Origin: Auanema rhodensis
Taxonomy: Eukaryota; Animalia; Nematoda
NCBI GenBank assembly: GCA_964057225.1
Contig: OZ059900.1
Location: 9,300,001 to 9,364,000, forward strand
Direction of reading: 5' to 3'
DNA: 64,000 bases
Part shown: positions 19,701 to 43,094 of the stretch, piece after piece
Numbering within the stretch: position 1 is the stretch's first letter
Layout: each line of letters opens with the position of its first letter
Position numbers and translations under genes: made by a program
Notes under the pieces: generated by a model
Told to the model about the DNA's origin: nothing
Databases searched by the model: none
The model's input: the letters and a program-made list of their open reading frames with translations, nothing else

Positions 19701-22700
19701 TAGACTTTGCGGAAGTAAGTATATTCTAAACAAAAAAAACGACTAAAATCTCATTATTTTGTCTGATCTTGTTTGGGCGCGTTTTAACTTAAGAAGAGAC
19801 ATAGCTAAAACAGCAGTTGAATTCAAATTTTTCAGTTAATGTTGAAAGGCTTAAGTGGCAGGAAACAGGCTGCACTCTCTACGCTCTAACAAGCTTTTAG
19901 TCATAGTCACAATCTTCATCGTTAAGAGATGAACAGGAGGCAAAGACAATGCTTTCATATTAAGAATATCTCGTCATCACAAGCAAAACAATGAAAACTA
20001 TACGCAGTGTTTTGTGAAAAATTGAATTAATTTTCAATTAATTCAAAAAAGAACAATATGAAAACATGAATAGAGAATTATTCTCAATTTGTAATTCAAA
20101 TAACGAGTAGCAAAAAGTTCAAATCATGCGGCATGATGATTAAAAATTGAGATTAAATTGAGCATATAAGCTGCAAGAGACATATAATTTCAGAAAAAAA
20201 CTGTAAAGTTTGAGATTACAAAGAAGAAAATCTCATTGAATTCTAGTATATTGAGTTAGTAAAGATGTCAGTATATGATTGAGATTAGACATGAATCAAG
20301 AAAATGTAACAGAAACGGAAGAAGAACGTAGTGCCAGATATGTGAGTCAAAATAAGCCAAAAAGGAAAGAAAAGAATAGAAGTGGGAAAAGAGAAACGAT
20401 ATACACACTAGCATATGTAAAAATGTCTTTGAATAGGAGGAAAACAATCAAAAATTAATTTTGTCACAACATTCGCAAACTTTTTAAAACATTTTTATAG
20501 AATAAGCAGTAAAATTAGATAACAAATACATGTATTCATGTCTGTTATCTGTTAGAAAAGGATAGTTAATACTTAGATCTCTACTTTGTCATATTTTTTT
20601 CAAGAAAAGACTGCTCAAAAAATTAAAAACAACAAAGTTTTATATGATAATCTATTTGTGAAAAATTCGGTATCAACAATCACGATTAGATGTTCCTTAT
20701 CAGCATGTTTCCAAACAAGCTGTTGAAAAAGACAAAAACTCAGACTCAATAAACAAGTCATTTAGCCTCATTACAATTGATTTCTAAAGGTTATAGTCCT
20801 GTTTCTGCATTAAGTTAAATGAACTAAACATAATATTTTTCTTAGATGTCACATAAATGAAGAAAAATTCAAATAAAATTAACAAGAAAAAGAAATTGTT
20901 TGAGAAAGAAATTAAGATATATGAAAAAAATTGTTCAAATACACAAATTCTCATACTATCTCTTCAATAGTGTCCAGTACAATATTCATTAATTTTTCAT
21001 TTCATAGTTATGAAACACAATGTTGTTTTTATAGACTGTTATGTTTGAGAGAAGAAAAGAATAATAATAATAATAGTAATATCAATTTTTATTATGACAT
21101 GACGAAATTGGAATGAAATCTATCAAGAAAATGAAAAAAAAAGTAGAAATTAAAGAAAAAATTAAAAAATATTACAAATTGAAATTGTGCATAAATCTAA
21201 TACGAATAAAATTATGATTTGAAATAAAATTTGATGAAAACGATAAAAAACGCGGATTATGATTAAAAACAACGTGAGCAAACCATATTCAGTCTGCATT
21301 TGGCGGTTTTTTCTAAAGAACAAAGGTTTGAAAAGGTATTTTAAAACCAAATCTTATGATAGTTATAAGCGTATAACATAACTACTTTACTATTATTCCA
21401 GAATTTGAAAAAAAACAACTTGGTTAAACAATTTAAATGGAGAAAAATCGTTATCATAGCTAAATTACAAGTTAAATAACAATGCTCACGATATGTCCAT
21501 AATTGTAGTTCGTAGTTTACTAATAAAAGATTCGAATTATAACAATATTGCTGAATCAATGAAGAACGTTGTTATGGTTCATGTGAAGATACAATAAAGA
21601 ATTTCTAAGTCTACTTACTATCACAGATATACCAATTGATGGACAAGGAACAAGAAAGAGAAGGAAAACGAAAATTTAGACGTTTGCCAATTAACTTAGA
21701 ATGAAACGAATTAAGTTCGGTGTGCACTTATCCATAAATAATTTGCAATTGGATTATTCGTATAAAACAAGATCAAATGAACTAAAAACAAATTCAGTTA
21801 AGCTTTGCCTAGTTAGCTTAACTTTGATTTGTATTGAATAACGGCATGACATGATCTGACACCAAATGATTTAAAGTTCAAAGCCCGAAAACGTTATGAT
21901 CTTTCTGAATTCTTTCTCAAAAAAATGTTGTATAGATGAAAAATTATGCGCGAACCCTCAAATGTGCTATGATTTCATGAAAAATAATTTATTTGACAAA
22001 AATTTATTGAAATTTATTTGATATAGTAATCAATCAGTGTAATATTTTGAAAAGCTCAAGACTTCAAAAAAATTAGAAACAATTATATGTGCCAAAAAGC
22101 TCAAAAAAACAAAGAAATATGTATATTCTAGCGTTGTGGTCACAGATTTCATATTACCAAGTGTATATGACTGAAAAGCAAAAAGTTACACGGAATGTTG
22201 TTCAACAACTTTAAGAAAACATGTGAAAGCAAAAATGTTTGTGAATCAACAATAAGAAAAAATAAAAAAAACTTTAAAAGGAAGAACAAGAACAAGAATA
22301 CTAGTCCTTCCGTTTTTTAGAAATTGATAGTGCCCAATATGAGAAAAAACTCCATGTTCTAAAAAAAAATATAATCACAGAATACTGATAACTTCAGAAT
22401 TGGAAAGAAATTCTGAAAACTTTTACGAGCCAATTCAGTTTGTAATATAAAATTGTGCGCATAGTGCCTTACATCCACTCTCTCTTTAATCATTATAGTA
22501 AAAATATATTGTTTCATAAAGAGTTATTAGCAAGTTATACGGGCTATTACATATATTTCTCCAAAAAACCACAGAATGCTTATAAAAAGTTCGAAAAAAT
22601 ATATAAAATCGAAATAATCATTAAAACAAAATTACATTACCTAATAATTCTTATAACAATTTTAATCATTCATAAATCTATATCAAATATGAATTTGCAG

Positions 22701-23605
22701 CAAAAACTAGTAAATTTCTGGTTTTCTTTTAAATTTAAATACATAGTTAGCAATTATAATATTAATAACATACAATATTAACAAAGTTATTCAAGAACCA
22801 ACATTGATGTGATAAAAGCTAAAGAAGGAAGAAATACAAAAAATAATAAAGTAAATCATATATTGTTTAAAACGCTAGAATTTATTAAAAATCAAATATC
22901 TTTGCTGCTTAGACGTCTAAAGGAGAAGAAGAATGAGGTGGAAAAACGTGGAAAATTCATTATTATATTCATTTATTTGTTGACTATGAGCAATTAATCA
23001 TCAAGATAGCTTATAAAACTTATAAAAGTACAAGAGAACGGGGAAAAATATTTTTTTTCTTTAACGTTGTATAGATTAAAAAATCTTAAAATAGATGTAA
23101 TGAGATATGATGTTCTATATAATTAATGATATGTTATGTCATTTTACATCCGCAATTGATTACAAATAATAATAACATTACAATACATTATTCTTATTTT
23201 TAAAACCTTATTCAAACTGCGTATATTACTAATGTTCGAAGTTAAACGGGAAATAATTTAACAGGGAAATGAGAAAAGCGGCCAATCCACAATGATGTGC
23301 TACACCGTTCATGCTTGATTCCTACCAAAAAACAATTAACGATTTGCACAATTACATAAGAGACCCGTGTGTTATGTGTTGCATCTATAACTCAGTTTGT
23401 TTTCATTAGTCATATTACTATATTAAATTCAAAAAGTATAAAAGCATGTTATACAATATTCAAGAATGATAAGAACGAGAAATGCAACAAACGATAAAAC
23501 ATGAAATATCTTTTTACTGATAAGCTTATATGATTGAAACTTTAATTTTCATTCAGTTTTAAGTTCACAAAACCTTTCAATCTTCATTCACGATATATAC
23601 TTGAG

Positions 23606-25115
23606 CACGGTTTAAAAAAATTACTAAAAAGCGACTAAAATCGACTAAATTTGTCTAAAATACCAAAAACAAAATGTAGACGACTAAACGACTAAAAATT
23701 TTGGCGAGAAAGCATTAGTCGACTAAAAATTATAAAAAGTCGACTAATTCGGCTGATATTAAATATTCAAATTTTTTTTTTAATTTGAAAAACCATATTT
23801 GATATAGAAAATTACCAAAAAAAAATATTAGCATTAAAATAAGCATGATAAATTAAATTTTCATAAAAAAAGGAAATTTTTTAAAATTCATTATCATCAT
23901 CTGTTCACCTACAACGTCCAAATGAGCACAGTTTTGCCATATTTCAAGAAAACTGAAAATGCTACAATGCACCAAAACTGTAAAGAAATCGTCAAAAGGA
24001 TCGACGAGCAACCAGTAAAGCCATCTAAAGAGGAAGCACAACCTTCTGAGTCAATCAAACAAGAAAGAGACTGGCTCAACGCAGACAACTCTAACAGACT
24101 TCTACTCGGAATGTACTATGGACCAGAAGTTGGTAGAATTCATAGCGGAAACCCATGTTCTGATTCCGTATTGTGGAATCTGATGCCTTTAAAAACTTGA
24201 TAAGAAGTTACAATGGTAAGTATACCTTTCCCAGCCATAAGAAGCTGGTGTCTATGCTCTTAAAAAAGAGCGAAGAGATAGACCAGGAGGTCAGATTAAT
24301 ATGCAGGAAGTACAGATTAGTATGCAAAAATGCAAAGGCTATTTCCATCACCACCGCTTTTTGGACAATTCCAAATATGAGAAAGTCGTTCACGGCTTTT
24401 ACCGGAGAATCCTTAAACGATAATTTCGAAAGTTTCTGATGGAAATGGTAGAACTAGAAGTTGAAAACGGTAAGCGTATATTGAATAAGCACATAATATA
24501 TTATATTTGAGGCACACCGCTGAATATCTGCTGCAAGTGATTTAGAGCAGATTCAACCATTTCGAGTTGAACACAAAAAAAGATAGTGTTATAGTAGCTG
24601 ATGGTGGAACTAATATAGTGAAGGCTAAAAAATCGACATCGCTCAACTAGTAAGAAAAGTTTAATTATTCTATCTAATCCTTCTATTGCATTGTCGCATT
24701 GTCCGCTCATCTATTGAACACGTTTGTTCAAGACCTGTACAAAATGAACCATCTGAGGGAAAGCGTAGAAAAAATTTCTTTGCTATCTCATACCTCCATC
24801 GCTGACACATAATGTATATATGGTTTTATGAGGAGTAAGCAAAAATCTAACAATTCAACTATAAAATTTTAGATGTTGTCAAAAGCACAACTTACCAAAC
24901 TTGCACCAGATGGAACTCTGTTTTCATAGCGATCTGTGAAGTTTGGAACGCAATTGATGCTGTCCATAAAACAGTTTTGAAGTTCAAGCTACAGCCACTA
25001 TCTGAAGAAGATGTGGAATTTCTAAGGCACATACGGGAATTATTCTTTCTCTATTTTTAGTCCACTTTGGAGCTGTGCAAGAAAAACTCAAAACTTAGCT
25101 GCTCAACACTTAGCT
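23606..25115 (+). mobile_element. Decayed hAT-superfamily DNA transposon (left end plus frameshifted transposase), truncated on the right
   Basis: hAT motifs in the correct order across shifting frames: ESDAFKNLI..YTFPS, ISITTAFWT (T-D-x-W with D>A), VADGGTNIVKA (about 24594), AHLLNTFVQD (about 24705), CTRWNS (24902). Left end at CACGGTTT is tentative. Confidence 0.85.
23621..23748. repeat. Subterminal CGACTAA repeats of the hAT element
   Basis: At least six CGACTAA copies, including a TTAGTCGACTAA palindrome, clustered just inside the putative left end. Confidence 0.7.
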
Positions 25116-25413
25116 ACACTTACGTTTTCATCTTCAAACTGTCATTTAATCCTCTGAATCTATACTTTTGGTAATTAAACTCGGCCAATTCATCAGCAGA
25201 GACAAGACTTCCTTCGCGTAAGCTTTGCTTTATTTCACTAAGCATTTATTCCATTTTATCAAACATCATACAATGAAGTTTGAGATGTTTCACTTGTAAG
25301 ATGTGAGTTAACCGGTCTTCTACTCGAGTATGAGAAGCAAACTCGGTTAACTTCTGTTCACAAAGATCTCTGATTTGTTCATCACTGAGATCGTTTTCGT
25401 TGTTCATGCTCAT
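25116..25413 (-). pseudogene. Repeat gene B, copy 1 (truncated within its intron by the array edge)
   Basis: Same sequence as copy 2; in-frame TAA at 25246-25248; last exon missing. Confidence 0.6.
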
Positions 25414-25650
25414 CTCTTTAACTGGAAATAAGTATTTAACTTTAAAAACAACAGCAATTCCAATAAAATGATCGAAAACATTAAAAAAACATATAAAATT
25501 GTTATACAGAAGAATAATTAAATCGATATAGTGTTTGAAATTCTCGCAATATCTAACTATCCCGCGTATTATTAGAGCACATAAGTGGTTATCAACAACC
25601 ATTCTTTCTTAAACTTATTTTTTAATTCTTCAAAGACTATTAACAAAGAG

Positions 25651-25674
25651 AAAAAGGTTTACGGCACCCGGGAT
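25651..25674 (-). pseudogene. 5S rRNA 3'-end remnant plus T-run, copy 1
   Basis: ttacggcacccgggat (25659-25674) is identical to 27240-27255 of the intact 5S gene and is preceded by the same agaaaaag. Confidence 0.75.
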
Positions 25675-26418
25675 GACTTACGTGAGGGATCAGATTTGTT
25701 CAATTGGTGAATATCTTATTTTTTCTTTCATAAAATTGAATATATATATAAATATATGATAAACATAAAGTTTTTATATAAAAGTCACAAAACAATTTAG
25801 AGTAACTGAAATCTTTATAAACACATGTCACTAGTAGCCCGAGCCCTTTCCTTCATATTCATCAATTTATATACAAATATATTTTTATTACATAGTTCGT
25901 CATGAATATGTAGATAAAGAGAAACATTAGAAGAAAATTATTTTGAAAAAAGTATAATATACCGTACACCACAACTCTCTATAAAACATTCTCAGGATAA
26001 TTCCCAAATTTGCCCTTTAAACTCATTTAATATGCTGTTGAGAAAATGAGCACAAAATTTAAATTTTTTTTTAAAAAGTGAATGAAAATGTTTCTTCAAG
26101 TTTACTCCAATTGTAGTTTTCGAAATAATTTCTATCATACCAGTTCGAATGATGATAATGGTATGTGAAATATATAAACGCTTTAAGCATTCATAAGATT
26201 TTTATTTTCTTAAAAATAGTACAAAATTGAAAAATTGTTAAAAGTCTTGCGGTCATCATAACCTTAAACAAGTTCTAATTCAAAAATAAAAAAAACAAAT
26301 CACAGCATATTCACAGAATACAATCAAGTTATTTGAATACAAATAACATAATTCACAAGACAAAGGCAAAAATTCATAATTTAATAGAATATAGCATACA
26401 GTTTACAACTCACTATGT

Positions 26419-26991
26419 TTAATCCTTGTTATCTATAATTTCTTTGAAATATCTTCTAGTCTCCTCATATTCTGTCATTAATGGCTTTGGAACTGTCATG
26501 TTGTTATCGAAATAAACTTCGATTTCACTGGCAAGAAATCGAAGATGCTGAGTCATAAGGGAATGAAGCTTTCGATATTCTTTGAACATGTTATTTTTAT
26601 GCTCTTGTTCTCTTCTATAGTTTTCCTCTTCAGCTAATTCAATTTTCATTAAAACTTGTTCAATTTTCCGATGCATCTTTGTTTCGTCTGTCAGTAAACC
26701 AAAATCAAAGAGCATACGATTATTCATTTCTTCGTCGTCGGAAACTGTTCCGTTGTTGTGATTTAGTGCTTTCTATTATAAACGATCAAGAGATTCATAA
26801 AGGAGATATTATCCAAACCTTGTTACTACTGTTTTCAGTGGACATCACGTTTCTTCTTCTACTCTGCCGAATATTTTGTGATTGTCTCTTTGACTCTTTT
26901 CTCACAACTTTTCCTTCATTAACAAATGATTCATCAACAAAATTCTACAACAATATAAATTGGAAATAACATAACAAAATTTACTAACCAT
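26419..26991 (-). CDS. Repeat gene A, copy 1: three-exon, 160-aa charged helical protein of unknown function
   Basis: Exons 26991-26989 (ATG), 26944-26819 and 26772-26419. GT-AG introns of 44 and 46 nt, both phase 0, remove the stops. TTTTCAG trans-splice-like acceptor 47 nt upstream. M-NFVDESF...SSNK-KALNHNNG...KEIIDNKD. Confidence 0.8.
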
Positions 26992-27225
26992 TTTGATCTT
27001 CGATGACCTACTTGGTTAAACTAAGACAATTGAAATTACTGAAAAATAAAAGAATTAAATTTTAAAAAAGTATTTAACAAGCTATATATGTAAAAAAATA
27101 ATAATTGGAAATAGAATCATTACGACATTTGGAGCATTTTTTATTTAAAATATAATTTATTCGCGCGTATCAATAGAGCGTGTATCTGATTATCAATAAC
27201 TATTTTCTTAAACTTTTTTTTTCTG

Positions 27226-27237
27226 AAAAAAGAAAAA
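27226..27237 (-). terminator. Pol III terminator (T5-C-T6) of the 5S gene; repeated in each unit
   Basis: TTTTTCTTTTTT at the 5S 3' end. Confidence 0.85.
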
Positions 27238-27355
27238 GCTTACGGCACCCGGGATTCCCAAGCCGTCTCCGATCCAAGTACTAACCGGGCCCAACGTTGC
27301 TTGACTTGCCAGATCGGACGGGATGGCGTACTTTCAACGTGGTATGGTCGTAAGC
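27237..27355 (-). rRNA. 5S rRNA, copy 1
   Basis: 119 nt, GCTTACGACCATACCACGTTGAAAGTACGCCATCCCGTCCGATCTGGCAAG...GGGAATCCCGGGTGCCGTAAGCT; closely resembles nematode 5S; ends pair to form helix I. Confidence 0.98.
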
Positions 27356-27378
27356 GAAGGCAAAGTTTTGTTGTACGC

Positions 27379-27384
27379 TTATAA
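27379..27384 (-). promoter_or_regulatory. TATA-like element at -24 to -29 of the 5S gene; repeated in each unit
   Basis: TTATAA at the position where 5S genes commonly have an upstream TATA-like motif. Confidence 0.55.
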
Positions 27385-27729
27385 CAGTCAACTTCGCTGG
27401 CCGTGGTATCAGAAAGTGCACAACTTTTGGCAGAAATAAAACATCTGCGTTATATTCTTTTATTCATTGTCTTATGAAAAGAAAACCGTCTTTTATTTTT
27501 TTACATCGTGAAATGAATATTCTATTGCTCATTTCGTTTACATGAAATGATATATTAAATAACTTTTCCATGATCATTAATATATCCACAAGTACTATCA
27601 GGTATTTATTATAAATAAAATAAAAAATATAAACAAAGTATAATAATTGTTTATTATAACAAAAAACAAATTTATAGTTAAATATCGAATAAATAAAATC
27701 TCAAGTAGATGTCTGTCAGTTGTTAAGTT

Positions 27730-28089
27730 TTATTCAGGATCATTGAAAACCTCGGCGCTGAAAAGAAACTTCATTACAAATCAGAATTACAACACTTACG
27801 TTTTCATCTTCAAACTGTCATTTAATCCTCTGAATCTATACTTTTGGTAATTAAACTCGGCCAATTCATCAGCAGAGACAAGACTTCCTTCGCGTAAGCT
27901 TTGCTTTATTTCACTAAGCATTTATTCCATTTTATCAAACATCATACAATGAAGTTTGAGATGTTTCACTTGTAAGATGTGAGTTAACCGGTCTTCTACT
28001 CGAGTATGAGAAGCAAACTCGGTTAACTTCTGTTCACAAAGATCTCTGATTTGTTCATCACTGAGATCGTTTTCGTTGTTCATGCTCAT
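27730..28089 (-). pseudogene. Repeat gene B, copy 2: two-exon paralogue of gene A with an internal TAA
   Basis: TTTCCAG acceptor 8 nt before ATG; exon 28089-27800; 42-nt GTAAGT...TTTTCAG intron; exon 27757-27730 with AATAAA over the stop. 105 codons, TAA at codon 56 (27922-27924). Confidence 0.7.
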
Positions 28090-28326
28090 CTCTTTAACTG
28101 GAAATAAGTATTTAACTTTAAAAACAACAGCAATTCCAATAAAATGATCGAAAACATTAAAAAAACATATAAAATTGTTATACAGAAGAATAATTAAATC
28201 GATATAGTGTTTGAAATTCTCGCAATATCTAACTATCCCGCGTATTATTAGAGCACATAAGTGGTTATCAACAACCATTCTTTCTTAAACTTATTTTTTA
28301 ATTCTTCAAAGACTATTAACAAAGAG

Positions 28327-28350
28327 AAAAAGGTTTACGGCACCCGGGAT
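28327..28350 (-). pseudogene. 5S rRNA 3'-end remnant, copy 2
   Basis: Copy 1 + 2676. Confidence 0.75.
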
Positions 28351-29094
28351 GACTTACGTGAGGGATCAGATTTGTTCAATTGGTGAATATCTTATTTTTT
28401 CTTTCATAAAATTGAATATATATATAAATATATGATAAACATAAAGTTTTTATATAAAAGTCACAAAACAATTTAGAGTAACTGAAATCTTTATAAACAC
28501 ATGTCACTAGTAGCCCGAGCCCTTTCCTTCATATTCATCAATTTATATACAAATATATTTTTATTACATAGTTCGTCATGAATATGTAGATAAAGAGAAA
28601 CATTAGAAGAAAATTATTTTGAAAAAAGTATAATATACCGTACACCACAACTCTCTATAAAACATTCTCAGGATAATTCCCAAATTTGCCCTTTAAACTC
28701 ATTTAATATGCTGTTGAGAAAATGAGCACAAAATTTAAATTTTTTTTTAAAAAGTGAATGAAAATGTTTCTTCAAGTTTACTCCAATTGTAGTTTTCGAA
28801 ATAATTTCTATCATACCAGTTCGAATGATGATAATGGTATGTGAAATATATAAACGCTTTAAGCATTCATAAGATTTTTATTTTCTTAAAAATAGTACAA
28901 AATTGAAAAATTGTTAAAAGTCTTGCGGTCATCATAACCTTAAACAAGTTCTAATTCAAAAATAAAAAAAACAAATCACAGCATATTCACAGAATACAAT
29001 CAAGTTATTTGAATACAAATAACATAATTCACAAGACAAAGGCAAAAATTCATAATTTAATAGAATATAGCATACAGTTTACAACTCACTATGT

Positions 29095-29667
29095 TTAATC
29101 CTTGTTATCTATAATTTCTTTGAAATATCTTCTAGTCTCCTCATATTCTGTCATTAATGGCTTTGGAACTGTCATGTTGTTATCGAAATAAACTTCGATT
29201 TCACTGGCAAGAAATCGAAGATGCTGAGTCATAAGGGAATGAAGCTTTCGATATTCTTTGAACATGTTATTTTTATGCTCTTGTTCTCTTCTATAGTTTT
29301 CCTCTTCAGCTAATTCAATTTTCATTAAAACTTGTTCAATTTTCCGATGCATCTTTGTTTCGTCTGTCAGTAAACCAAAATCAAAGAGCATACGATTATT
29401 CATTTCTTCGTCGTCGGAAACTGTTCCGTTGTTGTGATTTAGTGCTTTCTATTATAAACGATCAAGAGATTCATAAAGGAGATATTATCCAAACCTTGTT
29501 ACTACTGTTTTCAGTGGACATCACGTTTCTTCTTCTACTCTGCCGAATATTTTGTGATTGTCTCTTTGACTCTTTTCTCACAACTTTTCCTTCATTAACA
29601 AATGATTCATCAACAAAATTCTACAACAATATAAATTGGAAATAACATAACAAAATTTACTAACCAT
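29095..29667 (-). CDS. Repeat gene A, copy 2
   Basis: Copy 1 + 2676; identical ORF in the track. Confidence 0.8.
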
Positions 29668-29912
29668 TTTGATCTTCGATGACCTACTTGGTTAAACTAA
29701 GACAATTGAAATTACTGAAAAATAAAAGAATTAAATTTTAAAAAAGTATTTAACAAGCTATATATGTAAAAAAATAATAATTGGAAATAGAATCATTACG
29801 ACATTTGGAGCATTTTTTATTTAAAATATAATTTATTCGCGCGTATCAATAGAGCGTGTATCTGATTATCAATAACTATTTTCTTAAACTTTTTTTTTCT
29901 GAAAAAAGAAAA

Positions 29913-30031
29913 AGCTTACGGCACCCGGGATTCCCAAGCCGTCTCCGATCCAAGTACTAACCGGGCCCAACGTTGCTTGACTTGCCAGATCGGACGGGAT
30001 GGCGTACTTTCAACGTGGTATGGTCGTAAGC
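29913..30031 (-). rRNA. 5S rRNA, copy 2
   Basis: Identical to copy 1. Confidence 0.98.
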
Positions 30032-30405
30032 GAAGGCAAAGTTTTGGTGTACGCTTATAACAGTCAACTTCGCTGGCCGTGGTATCAGAAAGTGCACAAC
30101 TTTTGGCAGAAATAAAACATCTGCGTTATATTCTTTTATTCATTGTCTTATGAAAAGAAAACCGTCTTTTATTTTTTTACATCGTGAAATGAATATTCTA
30201 TTGCTCATTTCGTTTACATGAAATGATATATTAAATAACTTTTCCATGATCATTAATATATCCACAAGTACTATCAGGTATTTATTATAAATAAAATAAA
30301 AAATATAAACAAAGTATAATAATTGTTTATTATAACAAAAAACAAATTTATAGTTAAATATCGAATAAATAAAATCTCAAGTAGATGTCTGTCAGTTGTT
30401 AAGTT

Positions 30406-30765
30406 TTATTCAGGATCATTGAAAACCTCGGCGCTGAAAAGAAACTTCATTACAAATCAGAATTACAACACTTACGTTTTCATCTTCAAACTGTCATTTA
30501 ATCCTCTGAATCTATACTTTTGGTAATTAAACTCGGCCAATTCATCAGCAGAGACAAGACTTCCTTCGCGTAAGCTTTGCTTTATTTCACTAAGCATTTA
30601 TTCCATTTTATCAAACATCATACAATGAAGTTTGAGATGTTTCACTTGTAAGATGTGAGTTAACCGGTCTTCTACTCGAGTATGAGAAGCAAACTCGGTT
30701 AACTTCTGTTCACAAAGATCTCTGATTTGTTCATCACTGAGATCGTTTTCGTTGTTCATGCTCAT
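30406..30765 (-). pseudogene. Repeat gene B, copy 3
   Basis: Copy 2 + 2676; same internal TAA. Confidence 0.7.
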
Positions 30766-31002
30766 CTCTTTAACTGGAAATAAGTATTTAACTTTAAAAA
30801 CAACAGCAATTCCAATAAAATGATCGAAAACATTAAAAAAACATATAAAATTGTTATACAGAAGAATAATTAAATCGATATAGTGTTTGAAATTCTCGCA
30901 ATATCTAACTATCCCGCGTATTATTAGAGCACATAAGTGGTTATCAACAACCATTCTTTCTTAAACTTATTTTTTAATTCTTCAAAGACTATTAACAAAG
31001 AG

Positions 31003-31026
31003 AAAAAGGTTTACGGCACCCGGGAT
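31003..31026 (-). pseudogene. 5S rRNA 3'-end remnant, copy 3
   Basis: Copy 1 + 5352. Confidence 0.75.
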
Positions 31027-31770
31027 GACTTACGTGAGGGATCAGATTTGTTCAATTGGTGAATATCTTATTTTTTCTTTCATAAAATTGAATATATATA
31101 TAAATATATGATAAACATAAAGTTTTTATATAAAAGTCACAAAACAATTTAGAGTAACTGAAATCTTTATAAACACATGTCACTAGTAGCCCGAGCCCTT
31201 TCCTTCATATTCATCAATTTATATACAAATATATTTTTATTACATAGTTCGTCATGAATATGTAGATAAAGAGAAACATTAGAAGAAAATTATTTTGAAA
31301 AAAGTATAATATACCGTACACCACAACTCTCTATAAAACATTCTCAGGATAATTCCCAAATTTGCCCTTTAAACTCATTTAATATGCTGTTGAGAAAATG
31401 AGCACAAAATTTAAATTTTTTTTTAAAAAGTGAATGAAAATGTTTCTTCAAGTTTACTCCAATTGTAGTTTTCGAAATAATTTCTATCATACCAGTTCGA
31501 ATGATGATAATGGTATGTGAAATATATAAACGCTTTAAGCATTCATAAGATTTTTATTTTCTTAAAAATAGTACAAAATTGAAAAATTGTTAAAAGTCTT
31601 GCGGTCATCATAACCTTAAACAAGTTCTAATTCAAAAATAAAAAAAACAAATCACAGCATATTCACAGAATACAATCAAGTTATTTGAATACAAATAACA
31701 TAATTCACAAGACAAAGGCAAAAATTCATAATTTAATAGAATATAGCATACAGTTTACAACTCACTATGT

Positions 31771-32343
31771 TTAATCCTTGTTATCTATAATTTCTTTGAA
31801 ATATCTTCTAGTCTCCTCATATTCTGTCATTAATGGCTTTGGAACTGTCATGTTGTTATCGAAATAAACTTCGATTTCACTGGCAAGAAATCGAAGATGC
31901 TGAGTCATAAGGGAATGAAGCTTTCGATATTCTTTGAACATGTTATTTTTATGCTCTTGTTCTCTTCTATAGTTTTCCTCTTCAGCTAATTCAATTTTCA
32001 TTAAAACTTGTTCAATTTTCCGATGCATCTTTGTTTCGTCTGTCAGTAAACCAAAATCAAAGAGCATACGATTATTCATTTCTTCGTCGTCGGAAACTGT
32101 TCCGTTGTTGTGATTTAGTGCTTTCTATTATAAACGATCAAGAGATTCATAAAGGAGATATTATCCAAACCTTGTTACTACTGTTTTCAGTGGACATCAC
32201 GTTTCTTCTTCTACTCTGCCGAATATTTTGTGATTGTCTCTTTGACTCTTTTCTCACAACTTTTCCTTCATTAACAAATGATTCATCAACAAAATTCTAC
32301 AACAATATAAATTGGAAATAACATAACAAAATTTACTAACCAT
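31771..32343 (-). CDS. Repeat gene A, copy 3
   Basis: Copy 1 + 5352; identical ORF in the track. Confidence 0.8.
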
Positions 32344-32588
32344 TTTGATCTTCGATGACCTACTTGGTTAAACTAAGACAATTGAAATTACTGAAAAATA
32401 AAAGAATTAAATTTTAAAAAAGTATTTAACAAGCTATATATGTAAAAAAATAATAATTGGAAATAGAATCATTACGACATTTGGAGCATTTTTTATTTAA
32501 AATATAATTTATTCGCGCGTATCAATAGAGCGTGTATCTGATTATCAATAACTATTTTCTTAAACTTTTTTTTTCTGAAAAAAGAAAA

Positions 32589-32707
32589 AGCTTACGGCAC
32601 CCGGGATTCCCAAGCCGTCTCCGATCCAAGTACTAACCGGGCCCAACGTTGCTTGACTTGCCAGATCGGACGGGATGGCGTACTTTCAACGTGGTATGGT
32701 CGTAAGC
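32589..32707 (-). rRNA. 5S rRNA, copy 3
   Basis: Identical to copy 1. Confidence 0.98.
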
Positions 32708-33081
32708 GAAGGCAAAGTTTTGTTGTACGCTTATAACAGTCAACTTCGCTGGCCGTGGTATCAGAAAGTGCACAACTTTTGGCAGAAATAAAACATCTGC
32801 GTTATATTCTTTTATTCATTGTCTTATGAAAAGAAAACCGTCTTTTATTTTTTTACATCGTGAAATGAATATTCTATTGCTCATTTCGTTTACATGAAAT
32901 GATATATTAAATAACTTTTCCATGATCATTAATATATCCACAAGTACTATCAGGTATTTATTATAAATAAAATAAAAAATATAAACAAAGTATAATAATT
33001 GTTTATTATAACAAAAAACAAATTTATAGTTAAATATCGAATAAATAAAATCTCAAGTAGATGTCTGTCAGTTGTTAAGTT

Positions 33082-33441
33082 TTATTCAGGATCATTGAAA
33101 ACCTCGGCGCTGAAAAGAAACTTCATTACAAATCAGAATTACAACACTTACGTTTTCATCTTCAAACTGTCATTTAATCCTCTGAATCTATACTTTTGGT
33201 AATTAAACTCGGCCAATTCATCAGCAGAGACAAGACTTCCTTCGCGTAAGCTTTGCTTTATTTCACTAAGCATTTATTCCATTTTATCAAACATCATACA
33301 ATGAAGTTTGAGATGTTTCACTTGTAAGATGTGAGTTAACCGGTCTTCTACTCGAGTATGAGAAGCAAACTCGGTTAACTTCTGTTCACAAAGATCTCTG
33401 ATTTGTTCATCACTGAGATCGTTTTCGTTGTTCATGCTCAT
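33082..33441 (-). pseudogene. Repeat gene B, copy 4
   Basis: Copy 2 + 5352; same internal TAA. Confidence 0.7.
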
Positions 33442-33678
33442 CTCTTTAACTGGAAATAAGTATTTAACTTTAAAAACAACAGCAATTCCAATAAAATGAT
33501 CGAAAACATTAAAAAAACATATAAAATTGTTATACAGAAGAATAATTAAATCGATATAGTGTTTGAAATTCTCGCAATATCTAACTATCCCGCGTATTAT
33601 TAGAGCACATAAGTGGTTATCAACAACCATTCTTTCTTAAACTTATTTTTTAATTCTTCAAAGACTATTAACAAAGAG

Positions 33679-33702
33679 AAAAAGGTTTACGGCACCCGGG
33701 AT
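33679..33702 (-). pseudogene. 5S rRNA 3'-end remnant, copy 4
   Basis: Copy 1 + 8028. Confidence 0.75.
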
Positions 33703-34446
33703 GACTTACGTGAGGGATCAGATTTGTTCAATTGGTGAATATCTTATTTTTTCTTTCATAAAATTGAATATATATATAAATATATGATAAACATAAAGTT
33801 TTTATATAAAAGTCACAAAACAATTTAGAGTAACTGAAATCTTTATAAACACATGTCACTAGTAGCCCGAGCCCTTTCCTTCATATTCATCAATTTATAT
33901 ACAAATATATTTTTATTACATAGTTCGTCATGAATATGTAGATAAAGAGAAACATTAGAAGAAAATTATTTTGAAAAAAGTATAATATACCGTACACCAC
34001 AACTCTCTATAAAACATTCTCAGGATAATTCCCAAATTTGCCCTTTAAACTCATTTAATATGCTGTTGAGAAAATGAGCACAAAATTTAAATTTTTTTTT
34101 AAAAAGTGAATGAAAATGTTTCTTCAAGTTTACTCCAATTGTAGTTTTCGAAATAATTTCTATCATACCAGTTCGAATGATGATAATGGTATGTGAAATA
34201 TATAAACGCTTTAAGCATTCATAAGATTTTTATTTTCTTAAAAATAGTACAAAATTGAAAAATTGTTAAAAGTCTTGCGGTCATCATAACCTTAAACAAG
34301 TTCTAATTCAAAAATAAAAAAAACAAATCACAGCATATTCACAGAATACAATCAAGTTATTTGAATACAAATAACATAATTCACAAGACAAAGGCAAAAA
34401 TTCATAATTTAATAGAATATAGCATACAGTTTACAACTCACTATGT

Positions 34447-35019
34447 TTAATCCTTGTTATCTATAATTTCTTTGAAATATCTTCTAGTCTCCTCATATTC
34501 TGTCATTAATGGCTTTGGAACTGTCATGTTGTTATCGAAATAAACTTCGATTTCACTGGCAAGAAATCGAAGATGCTGAGTCATAAGGGAATGAAGCTTT
34601 CGATATTCTTTGAACATGTTATTTTTATGCTCTTGTTCTCTTCTATAGTTTTCCTCTTCAGCTAATTCAATTTTCATTAAAACTTGTTCAATTTTCCGAT
34701 GCATCTTTGTTTCGTCTGTCAGTAAACCAAAATCAAAGAGCATACGATTATTCATTTCTTCGTCGTCGGAAACTGTTCCGTTGTTGTGATTTAGTGCTTT
34801 CTATTATAAACGATCAAGAGATTCATAAAGGAGATATTATCCAAACCTTGTTACTACTGTTTTCAGTGGACATCACGTTTCTTCTTCTACTCTGCCGAAT
34901 ATTTTGTGATTGTCTCTTTGACTCTTTTCTCACAACTTTTCCTTCATTAACAAATGATTCATCAACAAAATTCTACAACAATATAAATTGGAAATAACAT
35001 AACAAAATTTACTAACCAT
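34447..35019 (-). CDS. Repeat gene A, copy 4
   Basis: Copy 1 + 8028; identical ORF in the track. Confidence 0.8.
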
Positions 35020-35264
35020 TTTGATCTTCGATGACCTACTTGGTTAAACTAAGACAATTGAAATTACTGAAAAATAAAAGAATTAAATTTTAAAAAAGTA
35101 TTTAACAAGCTATATATGTAAAAAAATAATAATTGGAAATAGAATCATTACGACATTTGGAGCATTTTTTATTTAAAATATAATTTATTCGCGCGTATCA
35201 ATAGAGCGTGTATCTGATTATCAATAACTATTTTCTTAAACTTTTTTTTTCTGAAAAAAGAAAA

Positions 35265-35383
35265 AGCTTACGGCACCCGGGATTCCCAAGCCGTCTCCGA
35301 TCCAAGTACTAACCGGGCCCAACGTTGCTTGACTTGCCAGATCGGACGGGATGGCGTACTTTCAACGTGGTATGGTCGTAAGC
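35265..35383 (-). rRNA. 5S rRNA, copy 4
   Basis: Identical to copy 1. Confidence 0.98.
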
Positions 35384-35444
35384 GAAGGCAAAGTTTTGTT
35401 GTACGCTTATAACAGTCAACTTCGCTGACCGTGGTATCAGAAAG

Positions 35445-35740
35445 TGTCGCGGTTAGTGATTATTTCTTTTATTTTTCCTATATTTTGCTCCATTTTAGAT
35501 TTTGTTTTTCATCGTTTCTCTCTACTTTGTCTATTTCAGATTGTACTTTTCGGCCCGCCTTCCTATATCGTCATCTTTAGGATCAAAAACACTTTATACC
35601 TCAACCAAACCTCAACGGACTATAGACGATCTATATTTTGTTGAATTGTTGATTCTTTAATAAAGCATTCTACCACTGATTATCTGTTCTATTGATCCTC
35701 AGCGGAATACCGACAACCGAATACCTTCGCCGAATAGACA
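35445..35740 (+). repeat. 5' LTR (296 bp)
   Basis: Begins TGTC where the array sequence breaks off and ends GACA one base before the PBS; contains AATAAA; partly repeated at 39610-39724. Confidence 0.85.
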
Positions 35741-35741
35741 T

Positions 35742-35754
35742 TGGTGCATCGACC
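35742..35754 (+). promoter_or_regulatory. Primer-binding site, complementary to the tRNA-Gly(GCC) 3' end
   Basis: TGGTGCATCGACC is the reverse complement of GGTCGATGCACCA, the 3' end of nematode tRNA-Gly(GCC) as I recall it. Confidence 0.85.
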
Positions 35755-36025
35755 ATTACGACTCAGGTCTCTGCTTCAACAGGTATTTTAACATATAACT
35801 TGGTGGCGAATCTTAAGTCCATCAACTCAGACGTGAAATTGTCTGCAGTAACCGAAATAAATTCGAAGCATAATAACGCTTCAATATACGACAAGTCGTA
35901 TATTTTTCATTTTACATCTCGTACTTGTACACCTTTCATTACTTGTTTCCTCGAATTTTTTCGAAACTTGACTTATAATTATCAGCTATAGAAGCTTACC
36001 AATAACGCCTCATACAGGGTTAGAA

Positions 36026-37921
36026 ATGGCTTCTTCAGTTGTTATCCAAATCCGTCGATCATACAACTTCTTAACCGTTTTGCTCAAACGCTACGCAAAA
36101 CTGTTCGACAATGAACCCGCTGGGGTATCTGATTCTGAAATTACATACGAAAGAATCGCTCTGCTTCAATCTACGTTACGCAATCACGAATCCGTTTTGA
36201 AAGAGTTTTCTACAACTCTCGACGCATTGAACAAAGACATTGAAAAATTCGGAAATCTTTTTAAAGATTCTGATAAAGAACAACGAGACGAAATGAAATC
36301 ATTATACGAAGAACTTGAAGAAAATCCAAACAATCGTCAAGCTCACAATATAGCTGACGAACAAAGATTATTACTCCTTGAGCGTATTAATCATATTAAA
36401 ACCGCAATTGCTTATGTTGAATTATCACTTCCAGAGAAAAAAAACAAAAACGTAACCGAAAACACTGGTACCGAAACAATACAACTTTGTTCAAATTTAT
36501 TACAATTCTTACAAACAAACAATCCCACTCAGCGTCCGGTAACTCAAATACCGACTTTCGATGGCACAAGGGGCATTGAACTGAATGAAAACAATTATTT
36601 TCGACTGAGAAAAGCTGATGAAGATGCACATATGAGATATGCTACAGATAAACTTCAATTATTGAGGAAAATGAAAAATTTATCTCCTGCTTCTGATGCA
36701 AAAAGCTGTAAGCAATTATTTGATTTGATCCGAAGCTATGATCGTCAAATTACAGCCGCTGGAAGTCATATTTGTCCTGAATTTTTCTTTACTAATTGCG
36801 CTGATAAATTTCCTCATTATATATTGAGTGAACTATATCGTCAACCAGATCCTCTAGATCAATCAATGGATGACATTTATCAACATCTCTCTTCACGAAT
36901 TTATGAATTTTATTTAATGGACAGTAGAAAACGAAATTCAGAACATGACTCACATAATTCACCAAATCATGGAAAACATGTTGATAAAACTTTCGACAAA
37001 TCCACTAAAAAGATTTGGACTTGTGTTTTTTGTGGTAAAAAAGGACATCCATCTTATTATTGCCGTACTTATGACACACCACAGAAAAAACGTGAAATCT
37101 TAAAGAACAAAGAAGTATGCTGGCTTTGTTTTTCTCCTTCACATCTCAGTCGTGATTGTTCTCGACCGAAATGTCCGAAATGCAAAAATGAGCACAACAG
37201 TTGCTTATGTCTAAATTCAGAACTTGAAACAAAGAGTCCTGAGAAAACTATCCCATCCCCAAGCATGATCATAACAGAGAGTTCAGGACAGGAAACTATC
37301 GAGGATACACATGATATAGAGATGAATCAAATTTTATTGAAAACAGCTATGACACATATATTCAGTTACACACAAAATAAATATATCACAGTAAAGGTAG
37401 TGATTAGTAGTGGCTCTATGAGTTCTTTCATACGCTCTGATATAGCTGAGGATCTTCAATTGCCTGTTAACAAAGTTCAACATCGCACATTCTTTGGAAT
37501 AGGTGGCCTCAGCGAAACACATGAATGTAAAGAAGTGAAAACTATTTTTTATACTTCTAATGGCAGTATCATAATAACCAACATGCTTACTAAACCATTC
37601 ATAGCTACATCGTTAAGAGCTCCACTTTTAGACAATAATGATCGTTCATTTATTAAAAGAAACAATATAACTTTAGCTAATAAAATGATTGATGGCCAGG
37701 CATTTCAACCAGATATTCTAATTGGATTAGATCGCTATAAGTTATTCGTTCATATGAATTCTGAACTTGAGTTACCCTCAACTTTGAGAATGCAGAATAC
37801 CAGTTTCGGTTATACCTTGTATGGTGAAATACCATATCATGAGCGAAATCATTCTGTTAGGTTAATAACAATTGATGAAATACAACAAAACAATGCAGAT
37901 GCACCCAGCTCACAGGAATAG
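36026..37921 (+). CDS. gag: BEL/Pao Gag plus aspartic-protease-like domain (631 aa, truncated polyprotein)
   Basis: IPTFDG; knuckles CVFCGKKGHPSYYC, CWLCFSPSHLSRDC and CPKCKNEHNSCLC; protease-like VISSGSMSSFI and PDILIGLD...TSFGYTLYG. The last roughly 15 codons are antisense env sequence. Confidence 0.92.
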   Translation: MASSVVIQIRRSYNFLTVLLKRYAKLFDNEPAGVSDSEITYERIALLQSTLRNHESVLKEFSTTLDALNKDIEKFGNLFKDSDKEQRDEMKSLYEELEENPNNRQAHNIADEQRLLLLERINHIKTAIAYVELSLPEKKNKNVTENTGTETIQLCSNLLQFLQTNNPTQRPVTQIPTFDGTRGIELNENNYFRLRKADEDAHMRYATDKLQLLRKMKNLSPASDAKSCKQLFDLIRSYDRQITAAGSHICPEFFFTNCADKFPHYILSELYRQPDPLDQSMDDIYQHLSSRIYEFYLMDSRKRNSEHDSHNSPNHGKHVDKTFDKSTKKIWTCVFCGKKGHPSYYCRTYDTPQKKREILKNKEVCWLCFSPSHLSRDCSRPKCPKCKNEHNSCLCLNSELETKSPEKTIPSPSMIITESSGQETIEDTHDIEMNQILLKTAMTHIFSYTQNKYITVKVVISSGSMSSFIRSDIAEDLQLPVNKVQHRTFFGIGGLSETHECKEVKTIFYTSNGSIIITNMLTKPFIATSLRAPLLDNNDRSFIKRNNITLANKMIDGQAFQPDILIGLDRYKLFVHMNSELELPSTLRMQNTSFGYTLYGEIPYHERNHSVRLITIDEIQQNNADAPSSQE

Positions 37922-38682
37922 CATCCCGAGAGACTTATCAATAAAATAAAACGAAAATCAACGGTTAGTTTAGGCAAAGTAGCCTTTGTAAAAAATTTTG
38001 TAGTTTTCTTACATTCAAAACTTGTATATAATTTTCGAATTTGAATATAACCAATAGAATGATTTTTAAATTTCATATCCAGGCATAAATCTTTAACTCC
38101 AGGAGAAAAAAGTTTTTGATCACTATATTGGTGATAACATTGAGTACGATTCAGACAATGTTTAGAAACCGAATGAATAACGTGATGATCGGTACAAGTA
38201 GAAAGCATTATTAATCAGAAATATCGTGAGTATACTGATAATTGATAATCGAGAGCCTCTTTTCCAAAATGGAGGATATAATTTAGGTTCTATAATTGGA
38301 GAAGGTTCAAAAACATCCAATAAAAACAACAAAACAGAATATTTTCAGATGAAGTTGGAGAAGGTTCAAAAACACCCAATTCAATATCACTTTGTTCCTG
38401 AGTAAGAGGTCTAAGTGTGAAAAAAGAAGATATGTAACGAATAGTATTAGACCAGGAATTATATCGATATTGATAAAATCCTATGCGTATACAGCAACAA
38501 AGGAGGCAAAATAAACAACAAAGTGGAAAAAACAATGACCACATGGCAAGATGGGGTGCGCAATGTGGGTTTCCAAGCAAATGTATGGATGAAAACTTTG
38601 CCTCTTCACATACTACAGGATTTGCAAATGCTACAGGTAAAATGATCGATATTGTGGTCAAAATTAAAATTGCAGACGTCAT
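37870..38682 (-). pseudogene. env: Env remnant: phlebovirus-like Gn/Gc glycoprotein of nematode BEL elements, internally deleted
   Basis: Signal peptide, LLGNPHCAP plus transmembrane segment (Gn end), Gc-like start CTDHHVIHSVSKHC..C..DLCL..IGYIQI..ECKKTTKFFTK, and LSGCYSCELGA (Gc domain III-like motif). Confidence 0.75.
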
Positions 38683-39120
38683 TGCTGATTTGAAATTCTT
38701 TCGCGAAGCGTATGTGATGTGATTCCGTAAAGGTAAGGTTCGAACTTTTTTTCTTTTTCAATTTACGTCGTTTTGATTAATAGTAGGCGAAATTATGGTT
38801 TGATTTGTTTTACAAGTGCTGTTGTTTTGTAATATCGTACGATTTTTGTCAGGCGTATGACCTGGGCCCCATGATTGTAATTCAGCCTCTTCCTCAAGAA
38901 TAGGATTATGTATTTTAGATGTAGGTATGTATATTTTTGAGAATTATTAATATCTGCTGATTCAGGATATGAAACAATATTGTTTAATTCGTGGATAAAG
39001 ATGAAGGTAATTGTATACCATGTTTATTGTTCAGAGTTTCCCAAGCAGCCTCTACCCTTAAAGATCATGAAATTTCTTCGGTATGAGAAGATGGACAAGC
39101 TGGTGTCATATCAGGTAAAG

Positions 39121-39591
39121 CACTTCGTAATTCAAGAGGATATAAATTGTTTAAGGAACTTGATATGATGCCACCAGCTGGAGTTACCAGCTGGAATGAG
39201 AACATTAGCTGTTTGAACAGAACTACTTATAAGTTCAGCAACCAAGTTTCCATTGACCACGAGGTAAGTTATCGTTATGTATAACTACAATTTCACGAAT
39301 ACTAGGTTTATTGGCATTTGCTGAAGATTGTTATCGGGAATGTTTGTAAATATCACGAATATATATCAAATATTCTGTTTGAAATTTATCCCAAAACATC
39401 TTAGCTGCATTAGACGTAAGTTGTAACGTTTCTAATGCTTGTTCAACATTTTGTTTTACAGAAATATCAATGGTATTATCATAAATTCGAGAACCACAAT
39501 CATTCGGAAGTGAAAGAACGAGACGAGCCGAAATGAAATCAACAGGACGAATAGGTAAATCATATATGTTATTTGAATCTGGATCTGTCAA
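39121..39591 (-). pseudogene. BEL/Pao integrase C-terminal region (DUF5641-like), disrupted
   Basis: PIRPVDF...FWDKFQTEYLIYIR, then LPRGQWKLG (39241-39267) and SLNNLYPLE (about 39132-39158), with a stop and frameshifts. Confidence 0.85.
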
Positions 39592-39609
39592 ATTTATTTA
39601 AAACGAACT

Positions 39610-39724
39610 TCAACTGGCTACAGACGATCTATATCTTGTTGTAATTGTTAATTCTTCAATAAAGAATTCTATCACTGATTATCTGCTCTATCGATCCTCA
39701 GTGGAATACCGACAACCGAATACC
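39610..39724 (+). repeat. Partial second LTR
   Basis: Direct match to 35612-35725; about 10 differences in about 106 aligned nt by eye; both LTR termini are missing. Confidence 0.85.
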
Positions 39725-41216
39725 GTGCAAGACCGGATCAACCCGTAAGATGGAGCTAGCGAGCAATACAATTTCATGAAGAAACAGTAATTGTGAATTT
39801 TAGACTGAAACAGACAAATAAGCCAAACAATAGCGATCACACTATATTTAACTTTAATTAAGCATTATTTCTTGCTAATTTTATCTCTGTCAATCTCTTA
39901 GCAAAGTTTGTTGTAAATTGTAACCTGACTGGCTGCATTGGGTTTTTCAATTTTTCTCATTTTTCAATGTAAACTGAAATTTTTTCCAATATAATCTTTC
40001 TATTTAAATAATCATTTCTGTTGTCCCGAGTGACCAAACAGTTACAACTCTGAATAAACCATACAGCACTAGTAATCCAATTAATCTTCAATATGGGTTG
40101 AATTCGAACATTACTGTAAGTAAGAGCCATTGTCGAATCTGTACTCTACTCTCAGTTATCGTGTTGACTTATAATGTCTTTTACATTAAGCCGAAACAAC
40201 AAATAAGCTTGAAAAGTATTGTTAAAATCAAAAAAAGATACTCAAACTGTTTGTACAAACTTTTTTCAATTGATTCTACGCTTTCATGACATCACGGAAT
40301 TAATTCCAGTGAAAAGTGTTATTGACAGAGATAGTTTTGTATTTTTTTTTCAGAATCAATATGAAGAATGAACGATTATGATCATGTAAAAAATAAGAAG
40401 AATAGGATTACGGTAGTTATTCTTTATTTTATTTCTTAACATTCGCTCTATTGATAATTTTAAATATTTCTCGTTAATTGAAGGTTATCACATAAACTGT
40501 TTTTTTCATAATGAGCGTTGTTAAAAGTTTCAGGAATTTCCATTCATCATGAGAAAGATTTTTTTTCCATTTATATACGGTTTGTGATTATTGTTCCAAT
40601 AAATAACATAATAGTGCCTGATTTCGTAGTGTTTCTTTTTTTTTCTTTAATTTTTCCAATAGGAAAGATTGGAAACCTCAGATTTTATATTTGAAATAGC
40701 TTTTTCTACATCTAGCTTGCCAGAAAATTGTTCTCAAATTCATAGAATTACTTGGTGCATCAAACATATACATCTGAGTGGAGAGATAAGTCGCTTAAGA
40801 TTATTAAAGTTAGATAATACTGACGCAGTTTACAGGTAAAGGTTAATAAACTACTTTTATTTATCAAAAACGGCATTTTAGGAGATAGAAGCAATCATGG
40901 GTTATGATCCTAATAGTAACTTGAAAGTGCTTTATTTACTTATCTGACAAGTACTGTATTCAAGAATGAGGATTCTCAATAGTTCAATTTCTAATATATA
41001 TATAACAAACAACAGAGTTACGGTAATTATTAAATAATTATTTAATTGAACTCTGCTCTATTGTTAAATTTAAATATTTCTCGTCACGAATATTGTAAAC
41101 ATCTTACTAATTTCATCATTCATTTTATTGATTAAAATTTTTTTGTACTTTAATCGTAATGTGTTGGTAATGTGTACATTTTAGTTTTATTATCTTTAGC
41201 AACGGGAATATTGAAG

Positions 41217-42305: not shown

Positions 42306-43021
42306 AACTCCCAAAAATGTAAAGAAGGTTAAAGCCTTCTTGACCAAATTTTTTCACACAAAACCTACAGTAGTTTTCAAAAAAGAAATAAAAAAGTTGG
42401 TTAAGAATGATCAGAAAGCTTCGGAAAATAAATGATATTATTTTTATAAGTTTCTGGAAACACTTTGAAATTATGAAATGAATGCATGTGGGCGCCAGGA
42501 GGACCAAAAAATTTTTTAAAATATATATTTTTAATATATATGCTTATCCGCCAGCAACATAGTTTCTCGATTTTTTGGTGAGCTGAATGAATGTTAAGTA
42601 TATGAAATGAAGTTTTATTCTGAACACGATTTTCATTTTGAGAATATGTATTAACTATATATATATATAATAAGAAATTATTTATTAAGAAAATAGACTA
42701 TTGAGAAATTACTGAGCATCATATGTATTTACTTTATACTAGAACGTAAAATCCAAGTTTGGTAAATACAAATTTATTATTTTTTAATTTAAAAAGACTA
42801 AGAGGAACTGTACTATCGCGAGAAGGCGTGTTTAAATATTCTTTGTTGAACTTAAAAGTTGAAGAAAAACTACAACTCTTGTTAGAGAAATACAAGAAGA
42901 CAAAGAAAAACAAATAAATAATCGATTAGAGAATCAATTGCTCTAAGAATATTTATAGTTTATCATATATGTAGTATGAATTATCTTATTATATATTTTA
43001 TATTTTATAGTTAATTCATAT

Positions 43022-43094
43022 AACATCTTAGTATAATGGTTGTATATCAGTTATAGTAAGGTGCACTTGAAGGTTCAAATCCTACAGTGATATC
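43022..43094 (+). other. tRNA-like A/B-box motif 1 (mirrored at about 45647-45719, minus strand)
   Basis: TAGTATAATGGT (43029) and GGTTCAAATCC (43072) at tRNA spacing; partial T-arm; no proper acceptor or anticodon stem. Confidence 0.5.

Follow-up and report, generated by a model that had tools for sequence, protein, structure and literature searches.

The stretch analysed here, a 64,000-nucleotide segment of the Auanema rhodensis genome (contig OZ059900.1, positions 9,300,001 to 9,364,000; hereafter the window), contains at positions 25116-35446, on the minus strand, a head-to-tail array in which complete 5S ribosomal RNA genes alternate with an intact protein-coding gene, termed here gene A. 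Gene A is a real, expressed and unannotated RNA polymerase II (Pol II) gene whose transcript receives the trans-spliced leader SL1 (spliced leader 1). The locus is a small young amplicon of a 5S-linked gene family and not the main 5S array of the organism. The reading that we favour, with a probability of roughly 55%, is that a lineage-specific gene family has been spreading as a module composed of a 5S gene, a 62-bp conserved box and an SL1 trans-spliced gene, and that its latest amplification took place in tandem at this site.

A 5S gene and an expressed, trans-spliced gene in the same unit

The elements that make up the 5S-gene A half of the repeat unit are the following:
27379-27384, minus strand: TATA-like element TTATAA, at −29 to −24 of the 5S gene
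27237-27355, minus strand: complete 5S rRNA gene, with copies at 29913-30031, 32589-32707 and 35265-35383 (Rfam, 107.5 bits each, model positions 1-120)
27226-27237, minus strand: RNA polymerase III (Pol III) terminator, runs of five and six T at the 3′ end of the 5S gene
27161-27222, minus strand: conserved 62-bp box upstream of gene A, containing CGCTCTATTG and CGCG
26989-27038, minus strand: gene A exon 1, preceded by the SL1 acceptor TTTTCAG (27045-27039); ATG at 26991-26989
26945-26988, minus strand: gene A intron 1, 44 nt, GT-AG, spliced in RNA run X12
26819-26944, minus strand: gene A exon 2, 42 codons, basic and of low complexity
26773-26818, minus strand: gene A intron 2, 46 nt, GT-AG, spliced in RNA runs X12 and X13
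26419-26772, minus strand: coding part of gene A exon 3, 117 amino acids; the other gene A copies lie at 29095-29714, 31771-32390 and 34447-35066

An initial annotation had placed a complete 5S gene with TATA-like element and terminator in every 2676-bp unit and, about 245 bp downstream on the same strand, a three-exon gene for a 160-amino-acid protein. Both proposals were borne out: Rfam recognises four 5S genes, accompanied by TTATAA and by the T5 and T6 runs, and the gene model is exact by coordinates. The splice acceptor TTTTCAG and the ATG of gene A lie 197 and 245 nt, respectively, downstream of the 5S 3′ end and on the 5S strand; the three exons are separated by two GT-AG introns of 44 and 46 nt and specify 160 codons (19.4 kDa).

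Expression was assessed by comparing the interval 21300-27230, chosen so as to leave out the 5S gene itself, with contigs from two probable RNA runs (X12 and X13) and two DNA runs (X4 and X9) belonging to three studies. The contigs of X12 and X13 sit on the exons of gene A and of a second gene, gene B (see below), and almost nowhere else, a distribution that identifies these runs as RNA. The junctions predicted at 26945-26988 and 26773-26818 are both spliced in these contigs, the former in one run and the latter in both. In addition, the first 16 nt of SL1 (reverse complement) are found joined at position 27044; since the last six letters of the leader align with the genomic acceptor, the join indicates that SL1 is added at 27038, the acceptor anticipated in the initial annotation. 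RNA contigs identical to the gene A of the array coexist with contigs differing at 10 of 161 nt, showing that both this array and paralogues are transcribed. RNA cover between the 5S gene and the gene A acceptor is near zero, which, together with the presence of the 5S gene's own terminator, argues that the gene A transcript is not driven from the head of the 5S gene. Gene A thus combines a spliced messenger RNA (mRNA), a trans-spliced leader and an intact reading frame. The terminator of the 5S gene reads TTTTTTCAG at 27224-27232 (minus strand), a perfect nematode splice acceptor whose use was not seen in the RNA contigs.

No SL1 RNA gene lies inside the unit, in contrast with nematode 5S-SL1 repeats. 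The SL1 22-mer has no match in the window (the best candidate shows five mismatches). Rfam, applied to the spacer with permissive settings, returned chance matches alone, with no SL, small nuclear RNA (snRNA) or hidden structured RNA, in line with the absence of SL1 noted at the outset. Scanning the whole window with Rfam revealed no structured RNA besides the four complete 5S genes.

The array is limited to about four copies

The array has a period of 2676 bp and comprises 3.86 units (2676, 2676, 2676 and 2303 bp). The units are nearly identical, with two variable sites in the whole array, at 30047 in unit 2 and at 35428 in unit 4. The spacer is present in 14 public sequencing runs, and the junction between units is found in DNA contigs (run X4, and run X9 as a loose end at 25116). 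For contigs that match the unit exactly, the depths are 49.9 and 53.4 in run X4, against 13.6 for the flank, and of about 700-780 in run X9, against about 185 for the flank. Contig depth is a rough measure and gives no strict copy number; still, the resulting ratio of 3.7-4.2 in two independent DNA studies matches the assembled count and leads us to conclude that the array consists of just these four or so copies and is not a collapsed ribosomal DNA (rDNA) array. A main 5S array, supplying most of the 5S RNA, would count tens to hundreds of tandem units, and 3.86 were found. Recent duplication explains why the units are nearly identical; the copies elsewhere have diverged by 6-9%.

These data separate the two halves of the original proposal. 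An unrecognised, intact Pol II gene does form part of the 5S unit and has been amplified with it; its homogenisation as the organism's 5S rDNA, in the place of SL1, does not agree with a depth of about four copies. Measured against the flank, gene A is not single-copy, being present in about four identical copies, and it is not amplified on the scale of rDNA either.

A second gene and the ends of the array

The unit itself appears to be an old dimer. A remnant of a 5S gene, a second box and gene B, all absent from the initial annotation, are found 745 nt past the gene A stop codon:
25659-25674, minus strand: what is left of a 5S gene, namely its nt 101-116, with a T-run behind and no internal control region
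25560-25623, minus strand: conserved box upstream of gene B, containing CGCGGGAT
25124-25421, minus strand: gene B exon 1 in the first copy, ATG at 25413, cut within the intron by the array end
27730-28097, minus strand: complete gene B, 105 codons with X at the stop; two more full copies lie at 30406-30773 and 33082-33449
27758-27799, minus strand: gene B intron, 42 nt, GTAAGT...TTTTCAG

The acceptor of gene B lies 235 nt past the 5S remnant. Gene B is transcribed: its transcript starts at the acceptor, and an RNA contig identical to the B of the array is present. Splicing of the intron was observed at a loose end at 25124 in run X12, originating from a slightly different paralogue. All four copies in the array carry an in-frame stop at codon 56 (25248-25246 in the first copy), a position at which transcribed paralogues differ. 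When the gene B protein, with X at the stop, was aligned with the helical part of the gene A protein, 41 of 2000 shuffles scored as well (p about 0.02), and no similarity was detected between the coding DNA sequences (506 of 1000 shuffles). Judging from these alignments, gene B is probably a weak paralogue of gene A, and the dimeric nature of the unit is supported, though weakly at the protein level. The pieces of gene B on each side of the stop, searched apart, yielded nothing significant. A resemblance to INCENP was discarded as probable chance: the INCENP_N match reached 15.8 bits against a cut-off of 25, with E 0.014 over 14 residues. Searching the Protein Data Bank (PDB) with gene B returned a flavodoxin at a similar E value and no INCENP.

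Both ends of the array are real junctions to unrelated DNA:
25087-25123: left junction, in which a short duplicated microhomology (period 15) links the array, inside the gene B intron, with a transposase relic
35445-39724, plus strand: rearranged BEL/Pao-like long terminal repeat (LTR) element forming the right edge and beginning 62 bp upstream of the last 5S gene

The left junction is covered by one DNA contig at flank, that is single-copy, depth (run X9).

The conserved box

The boxes preceding gene A and gene B are identical at 50 of 64 aligned columns, and none of 2000 shuffles reached their score after the 5S letters had been removed. The box is probably a Pol II promoter element driving both genes. 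The transcription of gene B in the absence of a 5S internal control region, taken with the fact that the 5S gene has its own terminator, indicates that neither gene A nor gene B is driven by the Pol III promoter. Outside the array, CGCTCTATTG shows no clear enrichment.

A motif of the form TACGGTA ... GCTCTATTG ... ATATTTCTCGT occurs in two copies, at 40408-40474 and 41018-41084, and shares CGCTCTATTGATA with the gene A box. Both copies precede an orphan open reading frame (ORF) at 41217-41720 (about 167 amino acids) with no 5S gene nearby; "orphan" is used here for a sequence with no relative detectable by the searches employed. This ORF shows no detectable paralogy to A or B. Separately, one contig whose depth is about 31 times that of the flank has the block 27139-27230 in common with the array before diverging; near 25474, a loose end terminates in a small stem-loop resembling the 3′ end of an snRNA. 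This contig may be the unit of a 5S-U4 array.

The gene A product is predicted to be a small helical protein

The exons of gene A were searched singly, exons 1 and 2 being too short for a useful search; the joined model was used only for checking the frame and for the A-B alignment. Exon 3 had no homologue in a 5.8-billion word search, in Pfam, among PDB sequences or among Atlas features. The sole match among 1.84 billion representatives, a bacterial tandem-repeat protein, was rejected as its score was summed over five repeats. Exact look-up of three ORFs of the window gave no match, so that these searches had no positive control for proteins of this species in the database. No transposon protein matched gene A in Pfam or in the database searches, an origin that the initial annotation had named as fatal to its proposal; more specifically, neither Pfam nor the databases contained a transposase, reverse transcriptase or gag homologue of the A or B pieces, as might be expected of a transposon or a 5S-derived short interspersed element.

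AlphaFold2 modelling of exon 3 alone (predicted local distance difference test, pLDDT, 84; predicted template modelling score, pTM, 0.54) produced helices at residues 12-23, 29-89 (61 residues) and 96-114, the latter returning along the molecule. Fold searches with this model retrieved generic helical hairpins and coiled coils alone (best Foldseek E 1.5; best VIA Z 8.3; Atlas template modelling scores up to 0.67). The 40 N-terminal residues of the protein are basic and of low complexity. The gene A product would most likely act as a small adaptor of the coiled-coil type, its N-terminal tail basic and its location possibly nuclear.

Paralogues and a proposed origin of the array

Variant contigs imply that the genome carries some 4.5-6.7 additional copies of the A type, with 91-94% identity, together with about two more of the B type (ratio about 2.3). 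Paralogous contigs differ from the array at 29 of 314 and 10 of 161 positions. The differences change amino acids at 5 of 10 listed sites in A and at most sites in B, a small and filtered sample. Within the window gene A adjoins a 5S gene and gene B a 5S remnant, and the order 5S (or remnant), box, gene has been kept through three duplication rounds of very different age.

We propose that repeated duplication has multiplied a module of 5S gene, box and gene, and that this module encodes a lineage-specific family of small helical proteins. The A and B halves of the unit would go back to an old duplication, after which the 5S gene of the B half decayed to 16 nt and gene B later acquired its stop codon. 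A middle round would account for the copies, 91-94% identical, located elsewhere in the genome, and a very recent round for the four-copy tandem array. Pol II would initiate at the box, just behind the 5S terminator, without relying on the internal promoter of 5S. The 5S gene might have been retained owing to its position within about 15 bp of the box, while identical dispersed 5S genes could offer the homology for unequal crossover, ectopic conversion or re-insertion of circles, as proposed for the wtf genes of fission yeast. The closeness of the 5S gene to the box, combined with this dispersed homology, would be the simplest cause of an order that persisted through three rounds.

Several points weigh against this proposal. 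The contig at about 31 times flank depth (run X4) also carries the block from 27139 onward, and the box may therefore be a general 3′ flank of 5S genes and not a dedicated promoter. Both the 5S linkage of the paralogous loci and their kinship with A rest on variant contigs that reach 27182, and the paralogy of A and B is weak at the protein level. Finally, neither end of the array falls in a 5S gene, the left one being a microhomology junction in the B intron and the right one an LTR element; with its ends outside 5S, recombination mediated by 5S sequences is at this locus a matter of inference.

If the linkage proves true genome-wide, dispersed 5S genes would be handles spreading a young gene family in an animal; otherwise the locus would amount to a young amplicon of the ordinary kind, made from an unannotated gene. 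Gene B provides a natural test of the role of 5S in the transcription of a neighbour.

Alternative explanations

The same data could be accounted for by ordinary local duplication: a cluster of orphan genes in a repeat-rich region would have undergone tandem copying, and the neighbouring dispersed 5S gene would be a passenger without causal role. This explanation, unlikely in our estimation but deserving serious attention, fits the presence of four near-identical copies alone, bounded by transposon debris and a microhomology junction. It also fits the transcription of gene B despite the loss of its 5S gene and the occurrence of a related motif (CGCTCTATTG) before the orphan ORF at 41217, with no 5S gene near. 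What it leaves unaccounted for is that the order of 5S or remnant, box and gene outlived at least three duplication rounds of very different age.

By analogy with S. octosporus wtf, genes A and B might instead be parts of a selfish, X-linked family, a drive or toxin-antidote-like system spreading between dispersed 5S genes. The family would then be an animal counterpart of the 5S-associated wtf drivers and might contribute to the biased X transmission of Auanema or to a distortion of the toxin-antidote type. The wtf/wag-like architecture (dispersed 5S genes, a two-gene module, fast divergence and pseudogenised copies) would suit such a system, as would the many amino-acid-changing differences between paralogues, within the small and filtered sample given above. 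Auanema males are reported to eliminate nullo-X spermatids (PMC11075566). We nevertheless regard this scenario as improbable: no homology or fold links either gene to any toxin or driver, a two-isoform poison/antidote structure was not seen, and the family is small, with about ten A-type copies. Were the genes X-linked and expressed in the germline, they would be concrete candidates for explaining how the Auanema X biases its own transmission.

Functional coupling, by which an active 5S gene (TFIIIA/TFIIIC, Pol III foci) would open or insulate the chromatin of gene A and boost its transcription, with selection keeping the pair together, seems very improbable. The 5S gene is indeed intact and identical in all copies beside an intact gene A, and gene B lost both its 5S gene and its frame; yet transcription and splicing of gene B persist although it lacks the 5S control region, and contig depth cannot rank expression. 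Lastly, the locus might be taken for the 5S rDNA repeat of the species, in which a protein gene replaces SL1, homogenised as rDNA and collapsed in the assembly. This view can draw on the tandem arrangement of nearly identical units, all of them with a complete 5S gene and none with SL1, but is hardly tenable given about four copies by depth in two studies, two ends joining unrelated DNA and the large 5S arrays reported from elsewhere in A. rhodense (10.64898/2026.08.27.747507).

Relation to known 5S-linked genes

Protein genes tied to 5S are already known, namely histones, the fission-yeast wtf/wag genes and the FSAR loci. The statement in the initial annotation that 5S partners elsewhere are solely RNA or histone genes overlooked the latter two (PMC9562144). 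In Schizosaccharomyces octosporus, the wtf genes show an association with dispersed 5S genes in 87% of cases, frequently with a wag gene in between, and spread via 5S-mediated conversion or circles has been proposed by the authors of that work (PMC9562144). The likeness to our locus is that of lineage-specific multi-intron genes beside dispersed 5S, often arranged as two-gene modules and including pseudogenised copies. The wtf genes, however, have been proven to act as poison-antidote drivers, with two isoforms and as many as 83 copies, and wtf and wag are divergent, whereas A and B are co-oriented, each with its own 5S gene or remnant, and belong to an SL1 trans-spliced animal family of about ten copies. 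No Pfam match to such a family was obtained with the A or B pieces, and A is a predicted soluble helical protein.

The FSARs (Five-S-Associated Repeats) of S. octosporus and S. cryophilus centromeres are described as short tandem repeats alternating with 5S genes, some of them coding (10.1101/2022.12.06.519325). They share with the present array the alternation of short tandem repeats with 5S and, in some cases, protein-coding sequence; unlike them, being fungal centromeric heterochromatin, it contains an expressed spliced gene in four copies amid transposon debris. The array resembles wtf and FSAR loci in layout but is not a member of either, there being no homology.

The Caenorhabditis 5S-SL1 cluster counts no fewer than 167 units in C. 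elegans, where 5S is paired with an SL1 RNA gene on the opposite strand and protein-coding sequence is lacking (PMC8961926; PMC11822377). There too a tandem unit joins a Pol III 5S gene with a Pol II transcription unit, but our array has four units and a same-strand mRNA gene that receives SL1. In other eukaryotes 5S genes are linked to histone or spliced-leader genes (Drouin and de Sa 1995, as cited in PMC10946416). These cases likewise place 5S inside the repeat unit of another multigene family; the partners are conserved, high-dosage housekeeping families, in contrast with the low-copy, lineage-specific orphan found here.

Germline-restricted DNA of A. rhodense is reported to contain 5S arrays, and the passages searched make no mention of 5S-linked protein genes (10.64898/2026.08.27.747507). 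Our literature search, with its incomplete coverage, found no nematode orphan mRNA gene family tied to 5S.

Young ampliconic families of orphan genes exist on X chromosomes, examples being Drosophila Sdic and mouse Slx. The present array has in common with them the recent tandem amplification of a lineage-specific gene into near-identical copies; they differ in not being tied to 5S.

Flanking elements and other features of the window

The transposase relic at the left edge (23603-25115) is frameshifted, bears CGACTAA subterminal repeats and is truncated by the array. Its sequence, in our judgement, suggests hAT-like motifs, to which Pfam gave no confirmation. Related copies occur in RNA contigs (loose ends 23616 and 23659). 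The idea that the array was the cargo of an intact DNA transposon was discarded, the relic on the left having no matching end on the right.

The LTR element at the right edge begins with TG (region 35445-35760) and has its gag gene and primer-binding site, TGGTGCATCG, on the plus strand, so that it points away from the 5S gene; the primer-binding site is tRNA-Gly-like. The element includes an intact gag/protease-like ORF of 631 amino acids (36026-37921, plus strand). It is internally rearranged: broken pieces of an integrase end and of a Phlebovirus-G2-like env lie on the minus strand, and the element is closed at 39606-39724 by an LTR piece of 89% identity.

Further to the right, an inverted repeat at 42881-45860, with arms of about 1.4 kb that are 94% identical and contain GA/TC microsatellites, is probably a foldback or non-autonomous DNA element. 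Three regions without real ORFs (2000-12000, 46000-50000 and 58000-61000) display a strong purine skew of the plus strand, GC skew and AT skew reaching up to 0.35. The low GC content of the window agrees with the 32% reported for Auanema rhodense (PMC6469403).

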